Positions 5,251-19,040 of a stretch of 64,000 nucleotides of DNA are shown here, in pieces. The notes below the pieces were generated by a model. It was given only the letters and a program-made list of their open reading frames with translations, did not search any database and had not been told where the DNA came from. The position numbers were made by a program, and so were the translations under genes. Location: IMG/VR virus record IMGVR_UViG_3300032242_003291, positions 124,001 through 188,000 of that record, one strand, 5' to 3'. Positions within the stretch are counted from its first letter, which is position 1. Each line of letters starts with the position of its first letter.

Positions 5251-5276
5251 ATTTTATATTGTGGTATTTATATGTT

Positions 5277-6587
5277 ATGAGTAAAGACATTAAACATATA
5301 TTCAAATCATTTGATACAATTCTTAATGAGAATAAATCAATGTTGAATGAGGTTGCAGCGTCAAGTACATCTTTATTTGGTGGTGCATCTGTTGTCGTTC
5401 CTGCAGATGGAAGTCATGCAGGTCAATCAGGATGGCAAAGTAACAACGCATGGGACATTAAATCAGACATCGGAACACCAGTATATGCAATTGCCGCAGG
5501 TACTGTTTTAACATTTACTGATTATGGACCAACACCAGTTCATAAAAATGGTAAAACCTTATTTGGTGCTGGATTCACAGTTGATAGTGACAACAATTTA
5601 CCTGACGTATATTATACTCACTTAGGAGATGTAACAGTTAGACCTGGTACTAAAATTGAATGTGGTCAACTTTTGGGATATGTTTTAGACTTTCCAGGTA
5701 GCGATTACGACCACGTACACATAGGTGTTGAAACTGGTCATAACATTAGAGAATTTCTTAATGCTGACGGTTCATTAAAATGCGGTGGAGGAACGATTCT
5801 TGGTCAGTTATCTAATACAAGTTCTGAGACCCCAACAGAAACTCAACCAAACAAAATTAGTACTGACGATTCAGGTGGAGACCCTTTAGTAGGACAGTTA
5901 GTTGCACCTTTATCAAAAATGTTCAAGTCAGGATTAAAAGAAAATAGAATAACTAAAGAAAAATTCTTTATTCAATTTTGTAATGTTTCTGACCCCAAAG
6001 TCAGTAATGGTCAACAAATAAGTGAAGGACAACTCATAGGAAAAACAACAGAGGATGTTGAAGTATCAAAATTAGATAGTTCATATTATAGAATCAATCT
6101 AACTAAAAATGATTATGATTTTGGTAAAAACGTTAAAAATAATCTTGGTATAATAATCATCCCAAAAGATTCAAACGATAAAATTAAAAGCCCTGTATCA
6201 GGAGTTGTTAATAATACAAGATATAACGCATCATGTAATAATCAAATTACAATTGAATGTTATAAGGAGAACGAACCTCAGTATGAACCTGAAAAGAAAA
6301 AATATAAAGGAGAACCTCAATATAGTGACCCTGTAGTTGCGGCACTAGTAGGGGCACCATTCAAACTGTTGAAGAATAAGTACAATAAAGACACTGGTGA
6401 ATTGGAGCAAAAAAGGTGGGGACGACCAGGTGATGGAAGACCTGTTGACCCATGGATTAAAGATGCGGTAACTGCACCATTCAAAAAAATAGGTGATATC
6501 TTTAGAAAAAAACAAAATGAAGAAGAGGAAAAAAGAAAAGTAAAAAAAGTTAATGAAAATATAGATAGAATTAAAAAACTTTTATAA
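5277..6587 (+). CDS. M23 family peptidase-domain protein
   Basis: DIKSDIGTPVYAIAAG, YYTHL and DHVHIGV zinc-site motifs; degenerate second M23-like domain. Confidence 0.75.
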   Translation: MSKDIKHIFKSFDTILNENKSMLNEVAASSTSLFGGASVVVPADGSHAGQSGWQSNNAWDIKSDIGTPVYAIAAGTVLTFTDYGPTPVHKNGKTLFGAGFTVDSDNNLPDVYYTHLGDVTVRPGTKIECGQLLGYVLDFPGSDYDHVHIGVETGHNIREFLNADGSLKCGGGTILGQLSNTSSETPTETQPNKISTDDSGGDPLVGQLVAPLSKMFKSGLKENRITKEKFFIQFCNVSDPKVSNGQQISEGQLIGKTTEDVEVSKLDSSYYRINLTKNDYDFGKNVKNNLGIIIIPKDSNDKIKSPVSGVVNNTRYNASCNNQITIECYKENEPQYEPEKKKYKGEPQYSDPVVAALVGAPFKLLKNKYNKDTGELEQKRWGRPGDGRPVDPWIKDAVTAPFKKIGDIFRKKQNEEEEKRKVKKVNENIDRIKKLL

Positions 6588-6618: not shown

Positions 6619-7242
6619 TTAGATTACTTCAAACAATTCAGTCTGAGATTTTCTTACTTTTTTATAATGTTGAGTTTCGTCAAGCCAATCTCTTTTTCCA
6701 ATCGGACAAACAACAACACTTTCTGTATCAGTCAATCCTAAGATTTCATTATACTTTGTTTTATCAAAACCTTCCATAGGACAAGCATCAATTCCAACAG
6801 TTGACAATGATGTTAATAAGTTACCTAAAGCTAAATAAATTTGTTTTTCAACCCAAGTACCTTTAGTTGCCTCATCCATAGAGTTGACTGCGTATTTCAT
6901 CATACCTTCATACTCAGCTAACATTTCTTTTGGAACTCCTCTTGTTTCAACAATGTTTTGAACAAACGCATCAACATCTCCATCATTAACATTTTTATTT
7001 TTTACAAAAACTAATAATGCGCTTGAATCAGTAATTTGTGTTTGTCCATAAGATGCCTCTTTAAGAGCATTTCTTTTTTCATTATCCATTACAATTAAAA
7101 CTTTATATGGTTGTAAACCAAATGAAGCAGGTGATAATTGGATAATCTCCTTCACTGTAGTTAATTCTTCGTCAGTTAATTGGTATGTAGCGTTAAATTT
7201 TTTGGTCGCATATCTCCAATTTAATTTTTCAATAATATTCAT
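6619..7242 (-). CDS. NAD(P)H nitroreductase (NfsB/NfnB-like)
   Basis: LNWRYATKKF, LSPASFGLQP, IDACPMEGFD motifs. Confidence 0.9.
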   Translation of the reverse strand: MNIIEKLNWRYATKKFNATYQLTDEELTTVKEIIQLSPASFGLQPYKVLIVMDNEKRNALKEASYGQTQITDSSALLVFVKNKNVNDGDVDAFVQNIVETRGVPKEMLAEYEGMMKYAVNSMDEATKGTWVEKQIYLALGNLLTSLSTVGIDACPMEGFDKTKYNEILGLTDTESVVVCPIGKRDWLDETQHYKKVRKSQTELFEVI

Positions 7243-7320
7243 AATTTACTTTTTTATAATGATAATAAAAAACCCCCAAACCGTCAAGTAAGGGGGTTAA
7301 TTTCTTTACAGAGAGTTATA

Positions 7321-7500
7321 TTATTTAACTTCTACTGCTTTTGGAGCTTCAGCTTTTGCTGAGTCTACAGTAACAACTGTAGAATCTTTCTTAGTTGAAT
7401 CTGCAACTACAGCAGTTGAATCAGATTTTACTTCAGTTGATGTTCCGTTTCCGCAAGAGGCTAATGCTACGATTGCGAATAATGCTACGATTTTCTTCAT
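7321..7500 (-). CDS. Small lipoprotein with repeated D-S-T/A motifs (59 aa, below ORF-track cutoff)
   Basis: Hand translation MKKIVALFAIVALASCGNGTSTEVKSDSTAVVADSTKKDSTVVTVDSAKAEAPKAVEVK; lipobox LAS-C. Confidence 0.85.
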   Translation of the reverse strand: MKKIVALFAIVALASCGNGTSTEVKSDSTAVVADSTKKDSTVVTVDSAKAEAPKAVEVK

Positions 7501-7607
7501 GTTTTTTTTCTTTTTTTTGTTAATGTATTAAACGTAATAGATTATAAATATATAAATTTATATCTAATAAGTCAATTTTTATGATATTTTTTTGAAAAAT
7601 TTTTTTG

Positions 7608-7695
7608 CGGAGAGTGCTGGATTTGAACCAGCGGTACCCTTTAGGAGTACGACAGTTTAGCAAACTGTTGGTTTAAGCCACTCACCCAACTCTCC
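7608..7695 (-). tRNA. tRNA-Ser(GCU)
   Basis: Cloverleaf GGAGAGTTGGGTGAGTGG…, anticodon loop TT-GCT-AA, long variable arm, G73. Confidence 0.95.
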
Positions 7696-7765
7696 TTAAA
7701 CTTGTCTCATACAAATAAAAATTCCCCTGAGGATTCAGAGGAATTTTCAACTATTCAATTAATTC

Positions 7766-8230
7766 TTATTTCAAGAATCTTAATTTATATAAGGTTGAAA
7801 AGATTAACTCTTGAACTCCGTCGATTTGATTTTGAATATAAGATTCTTTGACAGCCTTTCTGTTTTTTTCTATATTATCATCCAAATCTTTGAAATAACT
7901 TATTAACTGTTCAGTTGATTTATAATCAACCATTTTAACCGTTTTATATCCTGTAATCAAGTCATGTTTTCCTTGATAACTTTCAACAATACCATCGATT
8001 AACTCAACAATTTCATCATAGTAAGTTCCTAAAGCCATGTGTTCTGCAAACGATGATTGAGATTTTGTTTGCCAATGAAAAATATGGGCCTGACTTCTTG
8101 AATGAAGTAATGTAGCAATCATATCAACAACATCCGCTGTTTCAGTTGTTTCTTCTTCTTTTTTTTCAGCCTCGTTCAAGTGCATCACTTTGAACAACTG
8201 CTCCTTTGTTAATGTTAATTTTTTTTCCAT
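7766..8230 (-). CDS. Ferritin/Dps-like four-helix-bundle protein (phage DUF5856-like)
   Basis: LHSRSQAHIFHWQT, EHMALGTYYDEI…DGIVESYQG, TLYKLRFL; start corrected to 8230. Confidence 0.7.
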   Translation of the reverse strand: MEKKLTLTKEQLFKVMHLNEAEKKEEETTETADVVDMIATLLHSRSQAHIFHWQTKSQSSFAEHMALGTYYDEIVELIDGIVESYQGKHDLITGYKTVKMVDYKSTEQLISYFKDLDDNIEKNRKAVKESYIQNQIDGVQELIFSTLYKLRFLK

Positions 8231-8249
8231 ACATATAAATATATGGACT

Positions 8250-8324
8250 TGGGTGAATAACGGAAATCGTACCCGTGACAACTAAAACCACAATCTAGTG
8301 CTCTACCAACTGAGATATATTCCA
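8250..8324 (-). pseudogene. Degenerate tRNA-His(GUG)
   Basis: Cloverleaf with GTG anticodon, but mismatched pairs 1-72 and 2-71, no G-1, D-stem mismatch, T-loop TACGATT. Confidence 0.7.
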
Positions 8325-8330
8325 ATTTTG

Positions 8331-8402
8331 TGTGACTAGGGAGAATCGAACTCCCACAGAAAGTGCCACAAACTTTCGCCCTACCATTAGGCTATAGCCA
8401 CC
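8331..8402 (-). tRNA. tRNA-His(GUG)
   Basis: G-1 then GTGGCTA/TAGTCAC acceptor, anticodon loop TT-GTG-GC, T-loop TTCGATT; discriminator reads A. Confidence 0.9.
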
Positions 8403-8408
8403 GTGTTG

Positions 8409-8481
8409 AGGTCTTATTAGGATTTGAACCCAAATCTCTTCGTCCGTAGCGAAGCGTACTCATCCATTATACTATAAGACC
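8409..8481 (-). tRNA. tRNA-Arg(ACG)
   Basis: CTTCG-CTACGGA-CGAAG anticodon arm, full cloverleaf. Confidence 0.95.
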
Positions 8482-8485
8482 ATTG

Positions 8486-8556
8486 TTATCCGACCTGGAT
8501 TCGAACCAGAAATGACAGAACCAAAAACTGTAGTGTTACCGTTACACTATCGGACA
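8486..8556 (-). tRNA. tRNA-Gln(UUG)
   Basis: TGTCCGA/TCGGATA acceptor, loop TT-TTG-GT, T-loop TTCGAAT. Confidence 0.93.
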
Positions 8557-8561
8557 ATGTG

Positions 8562-8635
8562 TGGACCCTCACGGGCTCGAACCGTGGACCTAATGATTAT
8601 GAGTCATTTGCTCTAACCTGCTGAGCTAAGGGTCC
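8562..8635 (-). tRNA. tRNA with CAU anticodon, probably Ile2 (lysidine, reads AUA)
   Basis: CT-CAT-AA loop; C4-G69 and C5-G68 pairs typical of TilS substrates; no initiator GGG/CCC stem. Confidence 0.85.
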
Positions 8636-8643
8636 TAAATGGG

Positions 8644-8725
8644 TGGGAGCAACAGGACTCGAACCTGTGAACTCGAAAGAGGGAAGATTTACAGTCTTCT
8701 GCCATTGCCACTAGGCGATGCTCCC
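8644..8725 (-). tRNA. tRNA-Tyr(GUA)
   Basis: CT-GTA-AA loop, long variable arm. Confidence 0.95.
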
Positions 8726-8730
8726 AAAAA

Positions 8731-8858
8731 CAGGAAAGGAGAAGATGGTTCAGTGGACATCTCCTTTTATGATTGGCATTACTTATGGTAGTTTAAACTC
8801 CGACGATGTCTTATTCCAACCACTACCAGGTTTTTACATCATCATTCCCCAATCAACC
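8731..8858 (-). ncRNA. Candidate structured ncRNA between tRNA-Trp and tRNA-Tyr
   Basis: Stems TGATTGG/CCAATCA and TGGTAGT/ACTACCA, crossing GATGATGT/ACATCGTC, 3' hairpin AAAGGAGA/TCTCCTTT. Confidence 0.6.
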
Positions 8859-8863
8859 TTTAG

Positions 8864-8936
8864 CACGCATGTCAGGACTCGAACCTGAAACTCCTAGTTT
8901 TGGAGACTAGTACTCTACCAATTGAGCTACACACGC
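8864..8936 (-). tRNA. tRNA-Trp(CCA)
   Basis: CTAGT-CTCCAAA-ACTAG anticodon arm. Confidence 0.95.
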
Positions 8937-8944
8937 ATTCTTTG

Positions 8945-9016
8945 AGGTCAGTACAGGATTTGAACCTGTGTAAATAGTTTTGCAGACTATCGCCTAAGCC
9001 ACTCGGCCAACTGACC
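8945..9016 (-). tRNA. tRNA-Cys(GCA)
   Basis: ATAGT-CTGCAAA-ACTAT anticodon arm, U73. Confidence 0.95.
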
Positions 9017-9202
9017 ATTTAATGTTTTTTTCTCCTTATATTTTTTACACCTTTTTTTAGGTATTTCAACATAATAGGAACCAAAGACAGAAGTAAAAAC
9101 TCCAACGTAATTCATACCTTTCTCTCTGACATCCTGTAATACCGTACCCTCATAAAGGTGGGGAAAAATATCTATACTGTCTTTTTTTACTACTACTTTC
9201 AT
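8987..9202 (-). CDS. Hypothetical protein (3' end runs into tRNA-Cys)
   Basis: 71-aa ORF with A-rich start context. Confidence 0.5.
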   Translation of the reverse strand: MKVVVKKDSIDIFPHLYEGTVLQDVREKGMNYVGVFTSVFGSYYVEIPKKRCKKYKEKKTLNGQLAEWLRR

Positions 9203-9212
9203 TTTTTTATTT

Positions 9213-9419
9213 TTAATGTGTTCCGTCTACTAATGAAATACCATGTCTCAAACCTGTAATGAAATCTTCAATGTCTTGTTTTTTCTTGAAGTGTTGACCT
9301 ACAACAACTCCAACTTCATTTCCAAAATCACTTATATCACCATAATAACCAATATCTTCTGAACGAGCTACTAATAATTTTCCCGTTTCTTCAACTAAAT
9401 TTTGTATTATTTTTTCCAT
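9213..9419 (-). CDS. Hypothetical protein
   Basis: ORF; start corrected to MEKII. Confidence 0.55.
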   Translation of the reverse strand: MEKIIQNLVEETGKLLVARSEDIGYYGDISDFGNEVGVVVGQHFKKKQDIEDFITGLRHGISLVDGTH

Positions 9420-9426
9420 ATTTTTT

Positions 9427-9660
9427 TCATTTAACCATATCAAAGTTAAGATTATTATCTGACATTAACTCACGAAGTTCATCCCTTATTTCTTGATAAG
9501 CATCATACTTATCCTGTGGTAAATCATCGGACGCATATTTGGTCTTAGCCCTCAAAGATTGGTCCAATTCCCATAATACACTCCAAAATTTAAGACCCTT
9601 TGTTGCCAATTCAAACTCCTGATTATCGTCAGGTAAATTAAATTCAAGTATCGCTCTCAT
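9427..9660 (-). CDS. Hypothetical phage protein (M-x-AILEFNLPDD family)
   Basis: ORF; start corrected to MRAILEF because the longer frame overlaps tRNA-Phe. Confidence 0.7.
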   Translation of the reverse strand: MRAILEFNLPDDNQEFELATKGLKFWSVLWELDQSLRAKTKYASDDLPQDKYDAYQEIRDELRELMSDNNLNFDMVK

Positions 9661-9675
9661 AACACATTTATTTTG

Positions 9676-9748
9676 TGGTGACGGGCGGAATTGAACCGCC
9701 GACACATAGATTTTCAGTCTATTGCTCTACCAACTGAGCTACGTCACC
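9676..9748 (-). tRNA. tRNA-Phe(GAA)
   Basis: ATAGA-CTGAAAA-TCTAT anticodon arm. Confidence 0.95.
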
Positions 9749-9749
9749 A

Positions 9750-9965
9750 TTAATACACTTCAATATCTTTCAAAGGTACATCTTCTCCCTGAGTGTGCCT
9801 ATAAACTGTGTTGAAAAATTCTCCTAACAATCTATAGTCCTCAGGAATCATATGACAAAAATCAAATGCAGGAATTGCATCATGAATTTTACCTTGAACT
9901 ACTTTATCCCTTTTATCATCTGGTTTGTATTCAAACACAACATGACCTCTAAAAACATATTTCAT
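9750..9965 (-). CDS. Hypothetical protein
   Basis: 71-aa ORF between tRNA-Glu and tRNA-Phe. Confidence 0.6.
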   Translation of the reverse strand: MKYVFRGHVVFEYKPDDKRDKVVQGKIHDAIPAFDFCHMIPEDYRLLGEFFNTVYRHTQGEDVPLKDIEVY

Positions 9966-9978
9966 AATCTTTATTTTG

Positions 9979-10050
9979 TACCCCCGACGGGAATCGAACC
10001 CGTCTTTTCAGGATGAAAACCTGATGACCTAACCGATAGTCGACAGGGGC
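9979..10050 (-). tRNA. tRNA-Glu(UUC)
   Basis: TCAGG-TTTTCAT-CCTGA anticodon arm. Confidence 0.95.
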
Positions 10051-10059
10051 ATTGTTTCA

Positions 10060-10067
10060 CAAAGATA
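10060..10067 (-). promoter_or_regulatory. Bacteroidota-type -7 promoter box before tRNA-Glu
   Basis: TATCTTTG on minus strand with TTTG about 19 nt upstream. Confidence 0.7.
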
Positions 10068-10087
10068 CAACCAATATTTCAAATAAC

Positions 10088-10124
10088 AAAAAAACCCCGA
10101 ACTTCATTTCTGTCGTTCAGGGCT
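10088..10124 (-). terminator. Intrinsic terminator of attenuator candidate 1
   Basis: AAGCCCTGAAC…GTTCGGGGTTT stem followed by T-tract. Confidence 0.8.
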
Positions 10125-10152
10125 TCTATATATAACTCTCTTCAGGAATTAA

Positions 10153-10251
10153 CTAATCTTGAGGGTCACCGTCTGAACTACGTAGCATACTCTCATACCA
10201 ACAAGTTTCTTGCTGTGTACTAAATTCTATATGTTGCATTGTAGTTTTCAT
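10153..10251 (-). CDS. Putative leader peptide 1 (32 aa) ahead of the Glu-to-Ser tRNA run
   Basis: MKTTMQHIEFSTQQETCWYESMLRSSDGDPQD; promoter upstream, terminator downstream; codons match downstream tRNAs. Confidence 0.7.
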   Translation of the reverse strand: MKTTMQHIEFSTQQETCWYESMLRSSDGDPQD

Positions 10252-10267
10252 GTTATTATAATTATAT

Positions 10268-10275
10268 CAAAGATA
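10268..10275 (-). promoter_or_regulatory. Bacteroidota-type promoter driving leader 1
   Basis: TTTGACAA…TATCTTTG on minus strand, 16 nt before the leader ATG. Confidence 0.7.
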
Positions 10276-10335
10276 GGGAATATCTTCGAATTGTCAAATA
10301 TTTTTTTATTACAGTATTAAGAATATTTATATTTA

Positions 10336-10764
10336 ATGAAGGATTTACGTGAAATAATTAAAGAAACCTTATTGTTAGAAATTGCTGAGGTAATTGGTAA
10401 AATTCGTTCGAATTATGATGGAGAACCTTATGTGTTTAATATAAAAACAACTCATCATTCTAATCAAAGAGGGAGGGGAAGAAATGACATTGAATTTTAT
10501 GATGAAAGAGAAGTAACAAAAGAAGAATTAATGGAATTTTTGAAATTGCACATTAAAGATATTTTGAACTCAATAAAAAACGATAATATTATTTCAAATA
10601 TACCATTTGTTATGAAAAGTAAAAAATGGTCATTGTCTCTTGCAATCGGACCAAATAATAAAAGAGGTAATGTTTGGGACTTTGTAATTATGACCGTTTT
10701 CAGAGAAGGATATAATCAAAAATTAAAAACAGGAAAATACCAATTTATTTTGGATGTTCAATAG
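10336..10764 (+). CDS. Hypothetical protein
   Basis: 142-aa ORF preceded by TATTTATA. Confidence 0.65.
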   Translation: MKDLREIIKETLLLEIAEVIGKIRSNYDGEPYVFNIKTTHHSNQRGRGRNDIEFYDEREVTKEELMEFLKLHIKDILNSIKNDNIISNIPFVMKSKKWSLSLAIGPNNKRGNVWDFVIMTVFREGYNQKLKTGKYQFILDVQ

Positions 10765-10771
10765 TTAGATG

Positions 10772-10852
10772 TGCCCCAAGAGAGATTCGAACTCTCATGA
10801 CTTACGTCACTGGTTCCTAAGACCAGCGTGTCTACCGTTCCACCATCAGGGC
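10772..10852 (-). tRNA. tRNA-Leu(UAG)
   Basis: CTGGT-CTTAGGA-ACCAG anticodon arm, long variable arm. Confidence 0.95.
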
Positions 10853-10856
10853 ATGT

Positions 10857-10947
10857 ATCACATCAGACAGGCATTCTACTTCCCGCAAGCACGAAATTGT
10901 ATCTTATTTAACCCTACGTTAGCGGTACGGGTACCTGAAGATATGAT
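10857..10947 (-). ncRNA. Candidate rod-like structured RNA between HNH gene and tRNA-Leu
   Basis: Nested stems ATCATATC/GATGTGAT, CAGGTA/TGCCTG, CCCGTA/TGCGGG. Confidence 0.5.
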
Positions 10948-10948
10948 T

Positions 10949-11398
10949 TTATTTTTTTATTTTTTTTCTCCCCCTCCATGTAGGAGTTAATGAATGACAA
11001 TTAGGACAAAGAACTTTTAAGTTAGTAATATCATTATTTTTATTATTACCGTCCATATGGTCAACTTCCATACTAATTGGTTTACCCATCCATTCTGTTA
11101 TACCGCATTCTTCACATTTGTTTCCTCTTTCTTCTTTAACCCATTTTTTGATACTCCATATATGTGCAGTTTCATAATTTCGTTTTTTTCTAAATGTTTC
11201 CCTTGATTTAGTTATTTTTTCTGGATTAGAGTTATGACTATAATCACAATTTAACCACCATTCAGATTTAAGAACACCTTCACTAATTTTTTTCTTTATA
11301 TCTTCCGTTCTTATTCTTGAATTAGCACAAGATTTAGAACAAAATTTACCACTACCAAAAGAACCATCATGTTCTTTTTCGCATTTTAAGCATTTCAT
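10949..11398 (-). CDS. Free-standing HNH endonuclease with N-terminal Cys-rich zinc finger
   Basis: CLKC…FCSKSC N-terminus; CEECG…EVDHMDGNNKNNDITNLKVLCPNCH HNH motif. Confidence 0.9.
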   Translation of the reverse strand: MKCLKCEKEHDGSFGSGKFCSKSCANSRIRTEDIKKKISEGVLKSEWWLNCDYSHNSNPEKITKSRETFRKKRNYETAHIWSIKKWVKEERGNKCEECGITEWMGKPISMEVDHMDGNNKNNDITNLKVLCPNCHSLTPTWRGRKKIKK

Positions 11399-11402
11399 AA
11401 TT

Positions 11403-11439
11403 GAACTATAATTTATTTATTATAAATAGTCAATAGTTC
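11403..11439 (-). promoter_or_regulatory. Hairpin enclosing TATTTATA and covering the HNH translation-initiation region
   Basis: GAACTAT…TATTTATA…ATAGTTC, 3' arm ends 4 nt before ATG. Confidence 0.55.
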
Positions 11440-11455
11440 GATTATAAGTTATTAG

Positions 11456-11527
11456 TAGTCCCACCAAGACTCGAACTTGGAACATTTCATTAGAAGTGAA
11501 AAGTTATATCCCTTTAACTATAGGACC
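11456..11527 (-). tRNA. tRNA-Arg(UCU)
   Basis: TTTCA-CTTCTAA-TGAAA anticodon arm. Confidence 0.95.
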
Positions 11528-11555
11528 AATATATTACAAAGATAAGGAAAAAAAA

Positions 11556-12296
11556 CTATTCGGCAAAACTTTCTTCGTATATTGTATCTGTATCGTTTTC
11601 TTCTGTATTGTAAGTGTGAACTAACTCAATTTCCATATTATTAAAATTAAATATAAATTCACCATCAGAACCTTCATTTATTTCCCACCCACCATAGTAA
11701 TTTTCAAGTTGTCTATAACACCAATCTTCTATGTCTGTTGGTACTCCATCGCTTGTTTCATCAAAACTACTTTCAATATATCCTGAGTCACCAGAACCAT
11801 TATATTTTACTGTCAATATTCCTCCATTAGGTACTTGAATATCTTCAAAAACACCATCTTTCTCCCACTCTTCGAATATTTCCTGACCATCCTCATCCAC
11901 CCAATGATGAGCACTTGAATCACTTTTTGCATAAAATGTCCACCAATGTTTCACAGATATTTCCTGTGTTTTACTGTCTATATCAAATTCAATTCTTTCA
12001 TAATTCAAATCTTGTTCGTTAGGTTCTTTGAATAAATTTTTGTCTTCAATATAATCTCCAATTTTTTTAAGGATTTGTGTTAATCCATTAGGAATTTCAG
12101 CACTGTAGTTGTTTGAAAAATGAGTTTCTTGTTGCCAATTTATATCGGAAAAATTGAAATCAGACCATCCGTCAATATCCAATTCAATACTGCCATCTCT
12201 CATTCCAAGTGATGACAAGTATCTACAGACTCTTCTGAGGTATTGTTTATCCTCAGGGGTTAATATATTAAACGAATTTACATTTCTTTTTTTCAT
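11556..12296 (-). CDS. Acidic protein with C-terminal DUF6878-like domain
   Basis: VKYNGSGDSGYIE…GGWEINEGSDGEF pattern. Confidence 0.6.
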   Translation of the reverse strand: MKKRNVNSFNILTPEDKQYLRRVCRYLSSLGMRDGSIELDIDGWSDFNFSDINWQQETHFSNNYSAEIPNGLTQILKKIGDYIEDKNLFKEPNEQDLNYERIEFDIDSKTQEISVKHWWTFYAKSDSSAHHWVDEDGQEIFEEWEKDGVFEDIQVPNGGILTVKYNGSGDSGYIESSFDETSDGVPTDIEDWCYRQLENYYGGWEINEGSDGEFIFNFNNMEIELVHTYNTEENDTDTIYEESFAE

Positions 12297-12307
12297 ATAA
12301 ATAAATA

Positions 12308-12934
12308 TTACTCAAAATCTTCTTTCCATGAATCCTTATGATAGTTGAATAACTTAAAATCCTTTTCCAATTTTTCATAAACATAATCAGCAATTTCTTG
12401 GTCATAGTATGTTTTCCAACTAGGTCTATCAGATTTGAATTTATTAACTTTAATAAACTTGTTGAAGGATTCAGTTAATATATCCATATTGTCTCTAATT
12501 ATTGATAATGATTTCAAATCAGATTCTAAATGTTCGTATCTAATATAATATTTTGGTGCCATCGGCATTGCTTTTAGTGCATCGTGACATCTTGTATGCC
12601 AATAATTTTTGTTTGGTTTACCCTGAAATGAATCGCTTGTTGGATTATTAATTGGGTCTGAAAAAACAAATTCCAACCATTCTCTGTAATTCAAATCTTT
12701 TGTATGATGAACTTCAAAAAAATGCCAGTGTGAATGTAATGACGTAAGTCTTGAATATGGATTTCTTATGTTTACATATAAATCATAGTCATCTTTTCCT
12801 TTTTCACGTGGCATTGCAATCTCATGTAAATGAGATTCTGAAAAATTTAACAACTTCATCAATTCAAATGTGGCCCTTGATGCAGTTCTTTCAGGTATTA
12901 ACCATATTACTTTGTATTTGTCTGAATAATTCAT
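12308..12934 (-). CDS. Sulfotransferase-family-like protein
   Basis: IPERTASRA, VNIRNPYSRLTS, IRYEHLESDL, YEKLEKDFKLFNY motifs. Confidence 0.65.
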   Translation of the reverse strand: MNYSDKYKVIWLIPERTASRATFELMKLLNFSESHLHEIAMPREKGKDDYDLYVNIRNPYSRLTSLHSHWHFFEVHHTKDLNYREWLEFVFSDPINNPTSDSFQGKPNKNYWHTRCHDALKAMPMAPKYYIRYEHLESDLKSLSIIRDNMDILTESFNKFIKVNKFKSDRPSWKTYYDQEIADYVYEKLEKDFKLFNYHKDSWKEDFE

Positions 12935-13281
12935 TAATCTTCAATTTTTAGTGTTCTTATCATCCATTGAGGTCTTTGGTTTGTTGCAACATTGTTGACC
13001 CATTCTTTTGCAGATGGTATATAATTATTACAATCTTCCTTAACGTGTTGTTCACCAACATATCTAGTATATACTACCTTACCATCAGAATTTTTGAATT
13101 CTGAACCAAATCTTTTTTCCATCTCAAAAATTCCTTCACTATGATGTCTAAACATTCTGTGTAAAGAATCACCAAACCAACCTTTGGTTTCATCCAACCA
13201 TTCGTGTAAATGAATATAGTCTTCAGGTTTTCCACCAAATTTTTTGGCAGATGATTTTGCGTGTACGTTAGGATGTGCCAT
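12934..13281 (-). CDS. DUF6915-like protein
   Basis: MAHPNVHAKSSAKKFGG…HRMFRHHSEG…GEQHVKED pattern. Confidence 0.7.
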   Translation of the reverse strand: MAHPNVHAKSSAKKFGGKPEDYIHLHEWLDETKGWFGDSLHRMFRHHSEGIFEMEKRFGSEFKNSDGKVVYTRYVGEQHVKEDCNNYIPSAKEWVNNVATNQRPQWMIRTLKIED

Positions 13282-13864
13282 TCTTCCAAGAATCTTTATT
13301 GTAGTTTAATAATATAAAATCTTCCTTCAAATAATCATAAACAAATTGGGCTAATTCATCAGTATAAAATGATTGCCAACTTCTTGGGTCAATACTTTTA
13401 TATGAATTATGACGTATGTGGTTATTAAAAATATATTCTAATTCATCATTAAAATTTTCTTTAATGAACCATAAGTTATTTAAGTCTTCCTCTAACGATT
13501 CAAATCTAACAAAATAATTGGGCATTTTATTCTTAAACGCCTTAACTAAAGAAATATACATTTGTGTTGGTAGAACGTATAAATCATCCATTTCAATGGG
13601 TATTTTTTTTCTAACCCATATTTCAAAGGGGACCTTTTTATCAATTATTTTTGTTTCAATCGAAAAGTTATATATAGAAACTAAACGAGAATAGGGATTT
13701 CTAACATTAGCTGTTAGATAGTAATCCATATACTCAGTGTTATCTATGAACTTATGTTGATTGGAATCGGAAAAATTAAAATATTCCACTATTGGTCTAC
13801 AAGAACGAGTTGCCGCTCTCATTGGTAAAAACCAAAATATTTTTAATTTTTTAGAATATGGCAT
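13268..13864 (-). CDS. Sulfotransferase-family-like protein, paralog of 12308..12934
   Basis: LPMRAATRS, NVRNPYSRLVS, VRFESLEEDL motifs. Confidence 0.65.
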   Translation of the reverse strand: MPYSKKLKIFWFLPMRAATRSCRPIVEYFNFSDSNQHKFIDNTEYMDYYLTANVRNPYSRLVSIYNFSIETKIIDKKVPFEIWVRKKIPIEMDDLYVLPTQMYISLVKAFKNKMPNYFVRFESLEEDLNNLWFIKENFNDELEYIFNNHIRHNSYKSIDPRSWQSFYTDELAQFVYDYLKEDFILLNYNKDSWKNGTS

Positions 13865-14097
13865 TATAAAATTTTCTCGTCTTGTTTTTTTCGAGTTTCA
13901 GACTCTTTTACCATTCTAACCCAAGTCAAAATCACATCGATAGGTGCCAACAACCATGACAAAATTACAACCATTAATACGTCCAAACCTGGAGATAAAC
14001 CAATCTGACCATCGTTGTATTCTTTTTTATACTTTACTCCAAGTTGATAAAAACAATAGAGTAAACTGATAATGTAATAACCAATAAAAATATTCAT
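13864..14097 (-). CDS. Small two-TM membrane protein
   Basis: True start MNIFIGYY at 14097; the longer track ORF runs through tRNA genes. Confidence 0.6.
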   Translation of the reverse strand: MNIFIGYYIISLLYCFYQLGVKYKKEYNDGQIGLSPGLDVLMVVILSWLLAPIDVILTWVRMVKESETRKKQDEKIL

Positions 14098-14111
14098 AAT
14101 AAAAATTTTAG

Positions 14112-14184
14112 AGCCTCCTATCGGAATCGAACCAATGACATTATCATTACAAATGATACGCTCTACCTGCTGAGCTAAGGAGGC
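14112..14184 (-). tRNA. tRNA-Thr(UGU)
   Basis: TATCA-TTTGTAA-TGATA anticodon arm. Confidence 0.95.
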
Positions 14185-14189
14185 AAATA

Positions 14190-14294
14190 TTGGAACTTTG
14201 CGGTATTCCAACTGATGGGTCAGTCCCCACACCTCGGTTCGTGAAATGTAAGTTTCCAACCGATGATACTCTTCTGTCTTACACATTAGTATCC
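14190..14294 (-). ncRNA. Candidate pseudoknotted RNA 3' of tRNA-Gly(GCC)
   Basis: GATACT/AGTATC crossed by GTGTAAG/CTTACAT; further stems TCGGTT/AACCGA and TTGGAA/TTCCAA. Confidence 0.6.
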
Positions 14295-14299
14295 AGATG

Positions 14300-14372
14300 A
14301 GCGGAAGACCAGGCTCGAACTGGCCACCCCAACCTTGGCAAGGTTGTGCTCTACCGAATGAGCTACTTCCGC
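14300..14372 (-). tRNA. tRNA-Gly(GCC)
   Basis: CAACC-TTGCCAA-GGTTG anticodon arm. Confidence 0.95.
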
Positions 14373-14378
14373 TTAAGA

Positions 14379-14425
14379 GTGTAGTGGCGGATATCACACC
14401 TGTGGTTACTACACGTTTTATCCAC
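14379..14425 (-). ncRNA. Candidate H-type pseudoknot 3' of tRNA-Gly(UCC)
   Basis: GTGGATA/TATCCGC crossed by GTGTAGT/ACTACAC. Confidence 0.6.
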
Positions 14426-14429
14426 TTTG

Positions 14430-14502
14430 AGCGGGAGACCAGGCTCGAACTGGCCACCTATAGCTTGGAAGGCTATCGCTCTACCGAATGAGCTACTCCC
14501 GC
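14430..14502 (-). tRNA. tRNA-Gly(UCC)
   Basis: TT-TCC-type loop (CTTCCAA) closed by ATAGC/GCTAT; nearly identical body to tRNA-Gly(GCC). Confidence 0.95.
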
Positions 14503-14504
14503 AT

Positions 14505-14612
14505 GTTCCCGTTTTTTCCTCACATTTAGCCCAATCAACAGTGAGACATTGATTGGATTTTGATTATAGAAGCTTACAAGGTTTCCCCATTAAGCCGTTA
14601 CCACGGGCAAAC
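14505..14612 (-). ncRNA. Candidate multi-stem RNA between tRNA-Asp and tRNA-Gly(UCC)
   Basis: Closing CCCGT/ACGGG, GGCTTA/TAAGCT arm with GAAA loop, CCAATCAA/TTGATTGG arm whose loop CTCAC can pair with GTGAG. Confidence 0.55.
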
Positions 14613-14620
14613 TAATTCAG

Positions 14621-14695
14621 CGGACTAGACGGGACTCGAACCCGCGACCCCAAGCGTGACAAGCTCGTATTCTAACCAAGCTGAACTACCAGTCC
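14621..14695 (-). tRNA. tRNA-Asp(GUC)
   Basis: TT-GTC-AC loop, full cloverleaf, G73. Confidence 0.95.
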
Positions 14696-14701
14696 TTTTT
14701 G

Positions 14702-14773
14702 CTCTTTCTGAGAATTACGATATCTCGACCCCATCATTAACAGTGATGTGCTCTGCCTCTGAGCTAAGAAAGA
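14702..14773 (-). tRNA. tRNA-Asn(GUU) with atypical T-loop
   Basis: CATCA-CTGTTAA-TGATG anticodon arm; T-arm GAGAT-ATCGTAA-TTCTC. Confidence 0.85.
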
Positions 14774-14778
14774 ATCTG

Positions 14779-14851
14779 TAGGGAAGACAGGGTTCGAACC
14801 TGCGACCCCTTGGTCCCAAACCAAGTACGCTACCTACTGCGCTACTTCCCT
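14779..14851 (-). tRNA. tRNA-Pro(UGG)
   Basis: CTTGG-TTTGGGA-CCAAG anticodon arm. Confidence 0.95.
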
Positions 14852-14861
14852 ATTGGTTCAA

Positions 14862-14869
14862 CAAAGATA
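14862..14869 (-). promoter_or_regulatory. Bacteroidota-type -7 promoter box before tRNA-Pro
   Basis: TATCTTTG; a TTG 20 nt upstream lies in the terminator loop. Confidence 0.65.
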
Positions 14870-14871
14870 AT

Positions 14872-14905
14872 AAAAAAACCCTGAACTTTCAAGATTCAGG
14901 GTTTT
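14872..14905 (-). terminator. Intrinsic terminator of attenuator candidate 2
   Basis: AAAACCCTGAAT…GTTCAGGGTTTT stem plus T-tract. Confidence 0.85.
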
Positions 14906-14926
14906 AATATTTGGCTTTATTTGTTA

Positions 14927-15022
14927 TTACCATCCACTAGCTTCTGAACTTAAGCATAAGATACCCGTGCCACCGTTAGTCGGCGTGAATCCCAAATCTG
15001 TATCTAAATTCAAATGTCTCAT
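14927..15022 (-). CDS. Putative leader peptide 2 (31 aa) ahead of the Pro-to-Thr tRNA run
   Basis: MRHLNLDTDLGFTPTNGGTGILCLSSEASGW; TATTTATA upstream, terminator downstream; codons match downstream tRNAs. Confidence 0.7.
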   Translation of the reverse strand: MRHLNLDTDLGFTPTNGGTGILCLSSEASGW

Positions 15023-15035
15023 AGTGTAATAATAT

Positions 15036-15043
15036 TATAAATA
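15036..15043 (-). promoter_or_regulatory. TATTTATA motif (putative late promoter) driving leader 2
   Basis: Motif 13 nt before the leader ATG. Confidence 0.55.
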
Positions 15044-15056
15044 TATCCAAAATCAA

Positions 15057-15728
15057 TTAGTTATTCCCTTTTATAAAAATGTTTCCAGGTTTACTCATAT
15101 CGAACCTCATTACAGGACTCACAAAAGTAGTGTAAAGACGATATCTCCCTTTTGGTAAATAATTACCTGTGTAGTCAAAGTAATAGTTATAAATGGTACT
15201 ATTCAAAGTAACTATGGATGTTTTTAAACCTGTTCCGCCAATTTTGATTAATGATTGTTTGTATGTGTCATTGTTCATCGCATTAACAGGGATAAAGATG
15301 GTAACCCACACACTATTATCATTAATCGTTAAATTATTAATAGTTAATGAATCTATATTATGTGATATAACATTAACAGATTTGACTGAGGGTAGTTGTC
15401 CATTATACCAATATTTCAAATTAATATAATTCAAAACATCATTTTTATTTGCATCTGTAATTCCTGTTCCTAAATTGAATCCTAAAAATGGAAATCTTGT
15501 TGAATGTGTTACTGAATCTTTAAGATATTTCACAATTAAGTCTTGTTTTGATTTTGGTTCAATAAAAATGTAAGCAAGATTATTTGATTCTGATGTTATT
15601 GTGGATTTTGTAACCACATCATTCACTTGAATTGTATTGGTTTGATGGGATACGAAAATATCCTGTTTTGAACAAGAAACCACTGACACGGTTATTACCG
15701 CTGCTAAGATGAATTGTTTTAGTTTCAT
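15057..15728 (-). CDS. Lipoprotein of unknown function
   Basis: Signal peptide with lipobox VVS-C. Confidence 0.7.
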   Translation of the reverse strand: MKLKQFILAAVITVSVVSCSKQDIFVSHQTNTIQVNDVVTKSTITSESNNLAYIFIEPKSKQDLIVKYLKDSVTHSTRFPFLGFNLGTGITDANKNDVLNYINLKYWYNGQLPSVKSVNVISHNIDSLTINNLTINDNSVWVTIFIPVNAMNNDTYKQSLIKIGGTGLKTSIVTLNSTIYNYYFDYTGNYLPKGRYRLYTTFVSPVMRFDMSKPGNIFIKGNN

Positions 15729-17366: not shown

Positions 17367-19040
17367 ATGAGGGCATTAGGATTTTCTGTTGGCCATGATA
17401 AGGGCGCAGTTATAATTGAAGATGGCAAGGTTCTTGTTGGTATTACACAAGAAAGATTGACAAGAATAAAGCATGACGGAGCATATCAAGGGGGGAAAAT
17501 TCCTACCGAATCAATAAATTATTGCCTAAATTATTTGGGAATAACTTACAAGGATATCGATGTATTTGTATACAGTACAACAGAAATGATTGATGATGTA
17601 GATGACCAAATTAGAAAATTTTTTAAGTCCGATTTATCAGGTAAAACAACTTTTATACCTCACCATTTAGCACACGCATATTCATCTTTTTTCAGTTCGG
17701 GATTTGATGATGCTGCGGTTATTGTTGCAGACGCATCAGGAAGTATTCTTAACCTTTCAAACAAATTACCTAATTGGTATAAGGACGTTAAAAATGATGG
17801 TATAGATACAGAAGAAGATTGGACTGAAGGAATCTCAATATATAATTTCAAGAAAAATGAATATAATGAAGTTTATAAAAAATGGATAAAATATCCTGTA
17901 CCCTTAGAAACCGAGGATGGTGTGTCCCTTGGGACAATTTATTCTGAGGGTTCTTTACAATTAGTTTATGAATCAAATTTGCATACATGGCCTGCTGGTA
18001 AATTAATGGGATTAGCTTCTTATGCAAATCCTGAAATTGTTGAAGAAGCTCCTCCATTTGTAATTGAAAAAGACGATGATATTTTTATTCCAAATAAAAG
18101 AATTTATCCAAGAGTAGATTGGAGTTGCGATTTTTATTCAAGAGCATGTGTTGCAGGAATATATCAAAGAGAACAAGAAAGGGCAAGTTTAATTTTAGCA
18201 AACATGGCAAAAAAATTAACTAAATCAAATAATGTTTGTGTTGCTGGTGGTTCATTCTTGAATTGCAATTCCAACGAAAAAATATTGAATTCAGGTTTAT
18301 TTGAAGGGTGTTATTTTATTCCACCGTCAGACGACAGTGGAATTCCATTAGGATGTGCATGGTACGGTTATCAAAAATTAATTGATGTTGAACAAACAGA
18401 AATGTTGAGTCCTTATTTAGGTAAAACATATTCGGAGAAAGAAATTATTACAACAATTAATGAAAATCCATATTTGATTTTCGATAGGTATGATGATTTT
18501 AGTTTATTGAGTGAGGATGTATCTTATTGGTTATCTCAAAATAGAGTTATTGGTTGGTTTCAAGATGGTTCAGAAATTGGTCCGAGAGCCTTAGGAAATC
18601 GTTCTATATTAGCATCTCCAATCCATTCATGGATGACTGGACATATTAATTCAGATATTAAAAAAAGGGAATGGTATCGACCATTTGCGCCAGCTGTTTT
18701 ATTTGAACATCAATCAGAAATTTTTGAATCAGACGTATATTCACCTTACATGTTGGTTACTACATCAGTTAAAAAAGAATGGAAAAGCAAAATACCTGCG
18801 GTTACACACATAGATAATTCAGCAAGACATCAATCCGTGACTGAAACAAACAATCCAAAATTTTATTCTTTAATTAAAAATTTTTATAATAAGACTGGAG
18901 TTCCTGTTCTATTGAATACAAGCTTCAATGGTCCGAAAGAACCAATTGTTGAAACTCCTCAGGATGCCATAAATACATTTATGGAAACTGGCTTGGATTT
19001 TTTAGTTATCGGTAATATTTTAATTAAAAAGAAACCATAA
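17367..19040 (+). CDS. Carbamoyltransferase (NodU/CmcH/TobZ family)
   Basis: GHDKGA, QERLTRIKH, HHLAHAYS, EIGPRALGNRSILA, KKREWYRPFAP, VLLNTSFN motifs. Confidence 0.92.
   Translation: MRALGFSVGHDKGAVIIEDGKVLVGITQERLTRIKHDGAYQGGKIPTESINYCLNYLGITYKDIDVFVYSTTEMIDDVDDQIRKFFKSDLSGKTTFIPHHLAHAYSSFFSSGFDDAAVIVADASGSILNLSNKLPNWYKDVKNDGIDTEEDWTEGISIYNFKKNEYNEVYKKWIKYPVPLETEDGVSLGTIYSEGSLQLVYESNLHTWPAGKLMGLASYANPEIVEEAPPFVIEKDDDIFIPNKRIYPRVDWSCDFYSRACVAGIYQREQERASLILANMAKKLTKSNNVCVAGGSFLNCNSNEKILNSGLFEGCYFIPPSDDSGIPLGCAWYGYQKLIDVEQTEMLSPYLGKTYSEKEIITTINENPYLIFDRYDDFSLLSEDVSYWLSQNRVIGWFQDGSEIGPRALGNRSILASPIHSWMTGHINSDIKKREWYRPFAPAVLFEHQSEIFESDVYSPYMLVTTSVKKEWKSKIPAVTHIDNSARHQSVTETNNPKFYSLIKNFYNKTGVPVLLNTSFNGPKEPIVETPQDAINTFMETGLDFLVIGNILIKKKP

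Follow-up and report, generated by a model that had tools for sequence, protein, structure and literature searches.

A putative leader-peptide attenuator written in the codons of the downstream tRNA genes of a giant phage

Leader-peptide transcription attenuators regulate the amino acid biosynthetic operons of Proteobacteria (trp, his, pheA, leu, thr, ilvGMEDA/ilvBN). In these systems a short ORF in the leader transcript is rich in regulatory codons, an intrinsic terminator precedes the regulated genes, an upstream segment competes for the 5' arm of the terminator, and the stop codon is placed so that a ribosome finishing the ORF covers that segment. Multivalent leaders exist, as thr senses Thr and Ile, and ilv senses Ile, Leu and Val. 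The mechanism also applies to a few genes of the translation apparatus, the aminoacyl-tRNA synthetases, as in the pheST (pheM leader) attenuator of E. coli and the histidine leader peptides upstream of hisS paralogues in bacilli (PMC2965389). T-box riboswitches respond to tRNA status without translation, whereas leaders of the ermC and cat type sense translation without amino acid specificity. Our full-text searches found no description of leader-peptide control upstream of tRNA genes in cells or phages. Why large phages carry tRNA arrays, and how they express them, are open questions; current ideas link phage tRNAs to host tRNA loss during infection and to tRNA-cleaving defences.

We examined a 64,000-nucleotide stretch (the window; positions 124,001 to 188,000 of IMG/VR record IMGVR_UViG_3300032242_003291), in which a short ORF and a terminator lie just upstream of a run of ten tRNA genes from Glu to Ser. 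A second, paralogous module lies upstream of a Pro-Asn-Asp-Gly-Gly-Thr run. All features are on the minus strand:

10268..10298 (-), promoter of leader 1: TTTG, a 19-base spacer and TATCTTTG (Bacteroidota-type -33/-7 elements), leaving a 5' UTR of roughly 10-12 bases
10153..10251 (-), leader ORF 1: 32 codons from ATG plus TAG, with codons 5-22 as the proposed sensing part
10199..10215 (-), predicted hairpin inside the ORF (CAGCAAG, AAA, CTTGTTG; codons 13-18, Gln-Gln-Glu-x-Cys-Trp), a possible pause or anti-antiterminator element
10173..10181 (-), region 2, GTAGTTCAG, the 5' strand of the antiterminator, overlapping codons 24-27
10140..10146 (-), second CCTGAAG segment between the stop codon and the terminator, which could compete for region 2
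10088..10122 (-), intrinsic terminator: CCCTGAAC (10122..10115), a 12-base loop, GTTCGGGG (10102..10095, region 4) and seven T (10094..10088)
10060..10090 (-), second promoter-like site (TTTG, 19-base spacer, TATCTTTG) between the terminator and tRNA-Glu, its -33 element overlapping the T run of the terminator
9978..10050 (-), tRNA-Glu(UUC), first gene of the run that continues to tRNA-Ser(GCU) at 7607..7695
7749..7716 (-), terminator-like hairpin before tRNA-Ser(GCU)
14927..15022 (-), leader ORF 2: 31 codons plus TAA, rich in Asn, Asp, Thr, Gly and Pro codons
14944..14952 (-), region 2 of module 2 (TAAGTTCAG)
14875..14905 (-), terminator of module 2 (stem AAAACCCTGAA / TTCAGGGTTTT), followed by a T run
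14862..14869 (-), TATCTTTG -7 box directly before tRNA-Pro (14851..14778)

The original prediction held that the codons of leader 1 cover all ten specificities of the Glu-to-Ser run, partly in gene order, and this observation holds for the coverage, the order being present but weak. Glu(UUC), Phe, Cys, Trp, Tyr, Gln and His are covered by GAA/GAG, TTT, TGT, TGG, TAT, CAA/CAG and CAT, Arg(ACG) by CGT, Ser(GCU) by AGT, and the CAU tRNA by ATA (and ATG). The CAU tRNA is most similar, over its full length (77-80%), to E. coli genes annotated as tRNA-Ile, and its reading as Ile2 is therefore plausible. The complementary segments are also present: GTTCAG at 10178..10173 and CTGAAC at 10120..10115, one base from the predicted 10114-10119, with the second CTGAA at 10145..10141. 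The run is not one uninterrupted unit, as it holds five small ORFs and the hairpin at 7749..7716, neither of which had been noted in the original prediction; the promoter-like site before tRNA-Glu had not been noted either.

Random 32-codon ORFs drawn from the gene codon usage of the window cover all ten tRNAs with P = 6e-4 (2.7e-4 if the CAU tRNA must read ATA). A shuffle test on 19 codons had been proposed in advance as the way to challenge the coverage; no set of 19 random codons covered all ten in 200,000 trials, although that segment was chosen after the fact. Among 32-codon windows of real genes P = 1e-3, and among the 161 short ATG ORFs of the window P = 0.006. The Gln, Cys and Trp codons are tied together by the hairpin inside the ORF; after setting this block aside, P = 0.004. 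Overall, 61% of the leader codons are served by the run against 30% in genes (P = 2.7e-4), although four invariant or frequent Thr codons are not. Leader 2 covers 6 of 6 tRNAs of its run, and 43% of its codons are served by that run against 27% in genes (P = 0.04); in the relative L005 (relatives and their modules carry L numbers) the figure is 60% (P = 1.5e-4). The claimed agreement with gene order is weaker than stated. The longest common subsequence between leader and tRNA order is 8 of 10 (P = 0.01 by shuffling), but in relatives P ranges from 0.006 to 0.57 and the order is not significant in the second leader, so we treat it as chance.

The element is conserved in 44 distinct variants from uncultivated jumbo phages (the L1 family), the paralogous modules form a second family (L2), and more distant phages hold three further modules (L021a, L021b and L114). 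The L1 ORF is intact in all 44 variants, with an invariant start codon and one 3-base in-frame indel, and the core PTTPNGDxG is conserved in most of the L2 family. GenBank phage records gave no match, either by DNA or by the neighbouring 71-residue protein. No leader was found before the Leu/Arg runs, which follow ordinary protein genes. Among relatives, leaders cover 13/13 (L005), 10/10 (L014), 8/8 (L008) and 11/12 (L012) tRNAs. The distant modules cover 11/11 (L021a, P about 2e-4), 8/9 (L021b) and all ten tRNAs called by ARAGORN in the L114 run (P about 1e-3). A putative tRNA-Cys directly after the L114 terminator was confirmed by neither ARAGORN nor Rfam and was not used as evidence that a tRNA depends on read-through.

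Leader codons and tRNA content also change in parallel between lineages. The L021a and L114 runs lack tRNA-Glu, and their leaders have no Glu codon. The clade with tRNA-Asn inserted in the run has 3-4 Asn codons in its leader, and the L114 run, which also holds tRNA-Asn, has 3, whereas leaders whose run lacks tRNA-Asn average 0.7. The L021b run gains Ala, Glu and Met and lacks Asn, and so does its leader. However, the match is one-sided. Across 23 combinations of leader and run, 199 of 201 cases with a tRNA present have a cognate codon in the leader, but in 87 cases a codon is present whose tRNA is absent. Identical leaders occur with different tRNA sets, leaders keep Phe, Tyr, Gln and His codons where those tRNAs are missing, and L082 has tRNA-Glu but no Glu codon. 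A permutation test of strict two-way covariation is significant, but the relatives are not independent, so permutation P values overstate the support and we do not rely on this test. In the ORF itself, there is no excess of variation at third codon positions, and the hypervariable codons 6, 9 and 12 switch among chemically unlike amino acids, almost all of them served by the run, which fits selection on codon class rather than on a folded protein.

In all modules, the 3' end of the ORF carries a copy of the terminator's 3' arm, which can pair with the 5' arm and part of the loop to form an antiterminator mutually exclusive with the terminator. The module 1 terminator (an 8-bp G+C-rich stem, hairpin energy about -18 kcal/mol) is almost invariant in stem and loop across the 44 variants. 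In all of these, GTAGTTCAG pairs with CTGAACgAC (10120..10112) at 8 of 9 positions, and the changes within the pairing positions keep pairing as G-U wobble. In 7 of 7 modules folded without region 4, the minimum-energy structure pairs the ORF's 3' end with the terminator's 5' arm, the helix reaching into the loop. Four different stem sequences (CCCTGAAC, CCCTGAA-T, CCCGAAC and CCCATCT) each have a matching upstream copy; in L021a this is a 12-base perfect complement. In module 2, the helix with CTGAA plus three bases of the loop side is 92.7% paired in 12 sequences, two of its pairs show compensatory changes, and the covariation score is 0.148 against 0.068 in shuffles (reached by 0 of 500 shuffles). 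Duplex energies are -7.7 to -23.1 kcal/mol for eight leader modules and -1.6 to -6.7 for five ordinary terminators that follow protein genes in the same loci, which lack such a copy. The window's own antiterminators are the weakest of the set, at -11.3 kcal/mol (P = 0.04) for module 1 and -7.7 (P = 0.16) for module 2. The second CCTGAAG segment, conserved as TCCTGA in most L1 variants and absent in the L010/L011/L042 clade, could trap region 2, although in predicted folds it lies within the intervening hairpin. Region 2 is constrained as RNA, as the L014 clade keeps these bases although they are read in another frame.

Two further features expected of an attenuator gave mixed observations. In the modules measured, the stop codon lies from inside region 2 to 26 bases after it: 5 bases in L005, which represents the commonest L1 C-termini, 14 in L2, 10 in L021a and 1 in L021b. 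In the window the distance is 17 bases, at the edge of a ribosome footprint, so that a terminating ribosome would only just reach region 2, and these distances do not settle whether a ribosome finishing the ORF masks the antiterminator strand. No clear anti-antiterminator was found. The hairpin inside the ORF is predicted in single-sequence folds and in the consensus fold of the 44 sequences and is nearly invariant, with a hairpin of different sequence predicted at the equivalent place in L021a, and a weak helix sequesters GTAGTT. Neither has covariation, which leaves their role as a pause or anti-antiterminator element undecided. The candidate region 1 helix from the single-sequence fold, AACUAC (codons 2-4) with GUAGUU, was rejected because an uncompensated T-to-A change breaks it in nine variants.

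The leader promoter belongs to a pattern (TTTG-N18-21-TAnnTTTG) that occurs 17 times in the window against 3.9 expected, and TATCTTTG alone occurs 24 times against 5 expected. The block TTTGAMATATTGG is not enriched as a genome-wide motif (20 matches in the window against 14 expected). The leader promoter is conserved in most relatives; in L005 and L007 tRNA-Leu lies directly upstream in its place. The second promoter-like site, before tRNA-Glu, is well formed and conserved in relatives together with the block TTTGAAATATTGG, although it is a consensus match and not a mapped start site. The regulated genes are therefore not free of a promoter-like site of their own, and the attenuator cannot be the sole control. 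The same terminator-then-promoter layout follows ordinary protein genes, so the terminator could simply end an upstream unit.

These observations leave room for a different reading, which we consider unlikely, in which the switch is real but reports general translation status and mainly governs or insulates read-through from upstream units, with tRNA output coming essentially from the promoter after the terminator and the codon match being loose or secondary. A promoter-like site follows the terminator in the L1 family and in L021b, the L005 and L007 leaders have no promoter of their own, ORF 2 begins 32 bases after a 223-codon gene, and leaders keep codons for tRNAs that the run has lost. However, coverage is far above chance in five modules, down to the rare CGN Arg codons (0.64% of gene codons), and lineage-specific gains and losses (Glu, Asn, Ala) are mirrored in the leaders. 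In L021a and L114 the sequence after the terminator lacks a good -7 box, and read-through may be the main source of tRNA transcripts there.

It is also possible, though similarly unlikely, that the region is an untranslated structured RNA, either a small RNA ending at its own terminator or a switch operated by a protein or another RNA, the open frame surviving only because the bases are conserved for structure. Third codon positions show no excess variation (12, 13 and 16 variable columns at positions 1, 2 and 3), the most conserved peptide core coincides with a hairpin, region 2 is conserved as bases rather than codons, and the full leader folds better than shuffles (z = -3.5). On the other hand, the frame stays open in every L1 variant whose upstream sequence was available, the one indel in the L1 sensing part is 3 bases long, and an ORF of similar length ending near region 2 is present in most L2 variants and in all three distant modules, despite many substitutions. 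The stop codon always falls within or shortly after region 2, even where indels change the frame, and the codon content tracks the downstream tRNA set. In module 2 two synonymous changes (ACA to ACT, GGT to GGA) are also compensatory in a hairpin, which fits coding and structure acting together. An Rfam scan with permissive filters over 7000..15500 matched no known family at the locus; the best hit, Thr_leader (RF00506) on module 2 (14870..14968), scored 24.1 bits against a gathering threshold of 55 (E = 0.43), and module 1 had no hit.

Least likely is an ordinary small phage protein gene with its own promoter and terminator, for which the match to the run and the complementarity of GTTCAG to the terminator would be coincidences. 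Phage tRNA regions are full of small ORFs, the 19 tRNAs of the phage serve 63% of all gene codons, so some match is expected, and the segment and set were chosen after looking. Against this, the substitution pattern is not that of a protein under purifying selection, the C-terminus varies in length and frame, and neither peptide matched a PHROGs family. Moreover, five modules with different sequences share the same architecture while control terminators do not, the antiterminator helix shows compensatory changes, and coverage P values are 1e-3 or lower in several modules.

We therefore favor, with moderate confidence, the interpretation of 10298..10088 as a ribosome-mediated transcription attenuator tuned to the downstream tRNA set. 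The proposed interpretation of the original prediction, a translated leader matching the downstream tRNAs with GTTCAG competing for the terminator's 5' arm, is thus partly supported: the core idea gains comparative support. In this model, a Bacteroidota-type promoter starts a transcript with a very short 5' UTR. If the ribosome runs through to the stop codon it passes over and covers region 2, the terminator (regions 3 and 4) forms, and transcription stops at 10088. If it stalls earlier, at a codon whose charged tRNA is scarce, region 2 stays free and pairs with region 3 (the 5' arm plus the first loop bases), the terminator cannot form, and the polymerase reads on into the tRNA genes and the small ORFs among them. 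A shortage of the decoding capacity that the phage supplies would raise transcription of those tRNA genes, on top of a basal level from the promoter-like site after the terminator. Our data establish that the ORF, promoter, terminator and alternative pairing exist and are conserved, that the pairing covaries, and that the codon content matches the run more than chance allows. Translation of the ORF, the stalling geometry, the direction of the effect and a material contribution of read-through to tRNA output are inferences; no experiment was performed, and whether stalling changes termination, named beforehand as a point on which the idea could fail, was not measured. One detail does not fit, as the only CGT codon (codon 24) and one AGT lie inside the antiterminator segment and, by inference from the size of a ribosome footprint, a ribosome stalled there would mask that segment rather than free it.

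A broader possibility, which we judge about as likely as not, is that uncultivated jumbo phages of (inferred) Bacteroidota hosts carry a family of composite attenuators, each in front of one tRNA array and written in its codons. The phage would then measure by ribosome stalling whether the decoding capacity it supplies is sufficient, and raise transcription of exactly those tRNA genes when it is not, which would also be a built-in response to depletion or cleavage of host tRNAs. Such a sensor would give phage tRNA arrays a concrete, testable regulatory logic. It provides a compact design for sensing many tRNAs at once, extends ribosome-mediated attenuation to phages of Bacteroidota-like hosts, where such leaders are little documented, and gives a signature for annotating short ORFs in phage tRNA regions, namely a short ORF whose end copies the 3' arm of the next terminator.

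The locus shares with the Proteobacterial biosynthetic attenuators a short leader ORF rich in regulatory codons, an intrinsic terminator and an upstream segment competing for its 5' arm, with the reservation on stop codon placement given above. It differs in that the regulated genes are tRNA genes rather than enzymes, the leader samples 8-13 specificities, mostly once or twice each, instead of runs of one to three amino acids, it is phage-encoded with an inferred Bacteroidota host, a promoter-like site separates the attenuator from the regulated genes, no clear region 1 was found, and there is no sequence similarity. A Phe-rich leader with tandem promoters upstream of E. coli pheV was considered, but the MG1655 sequence upstream of pheV shows no such ORF, no paper was found, and it was dropped. 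The pheST and hisS leaders likewise apply attenuation to the translation apparatus and sense charging of the cognate tRNA, but they regulate synthetase genes for a single amino acid, whereas here the products are the tRNAs themselves and many specificities are combined. T-box riboswitches share the terminator and antiterminator alternatives responding to tRNA status, but a T-box binds one uncharged tRNA directly through a specifier codon and the T-box sequence; the Rfam scan gave no T-box hit, and the element is much shorter and contains a conserved ORF. Finally, in leaders of the ermC and cat type the translation status of a short ORF also remodels downstream RNA structure, but those leaders respond to drug-stalled ribosomes and mostly control translation initiation, whereas here an intrinsic terminator would be controlled and the codon content is matched to the downstream genes.

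The DNA examined is AT-rich phage sequence from the 317-kb IMG/VR contig IMGVR_UViG_3300032242_003291, and it has no relatives among GenBank phage records. Eighteen tRNA genes lie on the - strand between 7607 and 14851, with small ORFs, an ORF carrying an HNH-nuclease-like motif and a Dps-like gene interspersed among them. The two-part promoter pattern TTTG-N18-21-TAnnTTTG, which is typical of Bacteroidota, occurs 17 times against 3.9 expected, and TATCTTTG alone occurs 24 times against 5 expected. The host phylum is inferred from this pattern. Other features in and around the tRNA region are as follows:

5259-6587 (+), ORF containing an M23 peptidase domain, an auxiliary gene of the phage outside the present finding
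7766-8281 (-), gene for a Dps-like, starvation-inducible DNA-binding protein (PHROG 858, E = 6e-19) inside the tRNA cluster, followed by a strong hairpin terminator at 7749..7716, just before tRNA-Ser(GCU)
8255-8322 (-), possibly a decayed tRNA between tRNA-His and the Dps-like ORF, overlapping the TTG start of that ORF; the Rfam tRNA model scores 36.6 bits (threshold 29) but ARAGORN calls nothing, and relatives carry tRNA-Ile(GAU) after tRNA-His
10949-11398 (-), 149-codon ORF with the HNH-nuclease-like motif (Cys pairs and a DH...N...H pattern) between tRNA-Arg(UCU) and tRNA-Leu(UAG), which looks like a homing-endonuclease-type insertion
12308-12934 and 13268-13864 (-), two ORFs of about 200 codons, close together, with similar N-termini and similar C-terminal ends, apparently a nearby gene duplication of unknown function
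13864-14457 (-), 197-codon GTG ORF running across tRNA-Thr and both tRNA-Gly genes, almost certainly not a gene
17367-19040 (+), carbamoyltransferase (Pfam N- and C-terminal domains, E = 3e-68 for the C-terminal domain), also an auxiliary gene outside the finding

Upstream of the Glu-to-Ser tRNA run we found a short ORF (leader 1) with the following elements:

10298..10268 (-), promoter of the Bacteroidota type
10251..10153 (-), ATG ORF of 32 codons
10178..10173 (-), GTTCAG
10145..10141 (-), a second CTGAA
10120..10115 (-), CTGAAC
ending at 10088 (-), intrinsic terminator with stem CCCTGAAC / GTTCGGGG, a 12-base loop and seven T

The codons of this ORF include at least one for each of the ten tRNAs of the run, and this holds at isoacceptor level for AGT with Ser(GCU), CGT with Arg(ACG), and ATA with the CAU tRNA, which matches E. 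coli genes annotated tRNA-Ile over its full length (77-80% identity). The observation made in the original prediction, that the leader encodes all ten specificities, therefore held, although CTGAAC lies one base off the position first assigned to it. Comparison with genomic codon usage had been proposed in advance as a check on this coverage; random 32-codon ORFs drawn from the gene codon usage of the window cover all ten specificities with P = 6e-4. Windows of real genes reach full coverage with P = 1e-3, and the 161 short ORFs of the window with P = 0.006. Moreover, 61% of the leader codons are served by this run, against 30% in genes (P = 2.7e-4). The Gln-Gln-Glu-x-Cys-Trp core is a palindromic hairpin (CAACAAG, AAA, CTTGTTG in most relatives), and those codons are thus not independent; when they are left out, the remaining 25 codons still cover the other seven specificities with P = 0.004. 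The partial agreement with gene order, also claimed originally, is only weakly unusual and is not reproducible.

Related loci were retrieved by one protein-guided scan and two DNA-pattern scans, which gave 44 distinct versions of the leader region. The ATG is invariant, the frame is open in all versions, and the one indel in the sensing part is 3 bases long. The C-terminus, in contrast, varies in length and even in frame; one group of relatives (the L014 clade) reads GTAGTTCAGA in another frame but keeps the bases. Variable columns are spread evenly over codon positions (12, 13, and 16 at positions 1, 2, and 3, respectively), and the hypervariable codons 6, 9, and 12 switch among unlike amino acids, nearly all of which are served by the run. 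This pattern does not look like that of a folded protein under purifying selection, and fits a frame whose codon classes and embedded RNA segments matter. In two relatives (L005 and L007, about 5440-5490), tRNA-Leu(UAG) ends about 25-40 bases before the ATG and the leader's own promoter is missing, so the leader would be translated from the trailer of a tRNA transcript.

A second module lies in the same window upstream of the Pro-Asn-Asp-Gly-Gly-Thr run:

15022..14927 (-), 31-codon ORF, followed by a terminator with nearly the same stem (CCCTGAA / TTCAGGG) and a TATCTTTG box before tRNA-Pro

This module contains the same AGTTCAGA segment about 45 bases before the terminator, and these are the only two terminators of this kind in 64 kb. 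Its peptide is rich in Asn, Asp, Thr, Gly, and Pro, and the core of the family, PTTPNGDxG, uses only the five amino acids of that run. The enrichment is modest in the window (P = 0.04) and strong in L005 (P = 1.5e-4).

More distant modules were found on two further contigs, two on L021 (a 268-kb contig) and one on L114 (a separate 7.3-kb viral contig). The first module of L021 (L021a) has 31 codons before a Phe-Ile-Gln-Lys-Val-Tyr-Cys-His-Arg-Trp-Met run; it covers 11 of 11 and has no Glu codon, and the run has no tRNA-Glu. The second (L021b) has 22 codons before a run containing Glu, Thr, Met, Gly, Gly, Asp, Ala, and Pro, and eight consecutive codons are each exactly cognate to a tRNA of the run; the leader has Ala and Glu codons and no Asn codon, as does the run. 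The L114 leader (25 codons) covers the ten tRNAs that ARAGORN called in its run, including Asn, with three Asn codons. Directly after the L114 terminator (about 1575-1645, -) lies a tRNA-Cys-like sequence with an intact anticodon arm (GCA) and T arm but a broken acceptor stem. It is not called by ARAGORN and not listed by Rfam at its gathering threshold, and is probably a decayed tRNA gene, while the leader still carries a Cys codon.

In every module the last part of the ORF (region 2) carries a copy of the 3' arm of the terminator. When the 3' arm itself (region 4) is left out, the minimum-energy fold pairs this copy with the 5' arm (region 3) in the 7 of 7 modules folded (L114 was not folded), and the helix runs into the terminator loop. 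The stems differ between modules (CCCTGAAC, CCCGAAC, CCCATCT) but the upstream copy follows suit, in L021a as a 12-base perfect complement. Six kinds of ordinary terminator precede tRNA runs but follow protein genes, and none has such a copy at that distance. The best duplex energies are -7.7 to -23.1 kcal/mol for the leaders and -1.6 to -6.7 for five of the control terminators, although the antiterminators of the window are the weakest of the set. In the 12-sequence alignment of module 2 the helix is 92.7% paired and two of its pairs show compensatory changes, one of which involves a base in the terminator loop; the covariation score exceeds all 500 shuffles and all slid controls. In module 1 the changes within the pairing positions keep pairing as G-U wobble. 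The stop codon lies from inside region 2 to 26 bases downstream of it, and in the window it is 17 bases past region 2.

Whereas these elements and their conservation are shown here, the mechanism is inferred. In this view, a ribosome that completes the ORF would cover region 2, so that the terminator forms, while a ribosome stalled earlier, at a codon whose charged tRNA is scarce, would leave region 2 free to pair with region 3, and the polymerase would read on into the tRNA genes. The only CGT codon and one AGT lie inside region 2, and, by inference from ribosome footprint size, stalling there would mask the antiterminator strand rather than free it. The hairpin inside the ORF may act as a pause or anti-antiterminator element, but we could not support this by covariation. 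The original interpretation of leader 1 as an attenuator matched to its tRNAs is partly supported.

A well-formed promoter-like site lies between the terminator and tRNA-Glu (10090..10060, -) and is conserved; read-through would therefore add to basal transcription rather than be the sole control. The same terminator-then-promoter layout follows ordinary genes. A conserved block, TCTTTGA(A/C)ATATTGG, lies 10-25 bases before the first tRNA of a run, even in distant phages where the -7 box is poor:

window 10060-10083 (-)
L021, about 1113-1128 and 9753-9768
L114, about 1550-1565 (-)

This block is not enriched elsewhere in the window, and could be a promoter for another polymerase or sigma factor, or a processing signal. 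The match of leader to tRNA set is one-sided, as 199 of 201 tRNA-present cases have a cognate codon but 87 cases have a codon without the tRNA, and identical leaders occur with different tRNA sets. The lineages are related, so the number of independent events is small. Overall, we consider the attenuator reading somewhat more likely than not, with the remainder split among a general translation-status switch of little consequence for tRNA output, an untranslated RNA element, and a coincidental small gene.

No T-box or other Rfam family matches the element. Module 2 (14870-14968, -) gives a sub-threshold match to the Rfam threonine operon leader (24.1 bits against a threshold of 55, E = 0.43), which is not significant and is mentioned only because that family is also a leader-peptide attenuator. 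Full-text searches found no description of such control of tRNA genes. The architecture is that of classical leader-peptide attenuators, from which the element differs in that the regulated genes are tRNA genes, the leader samples many specificities, the element is phage-borne, and a promoter-like site follows it.
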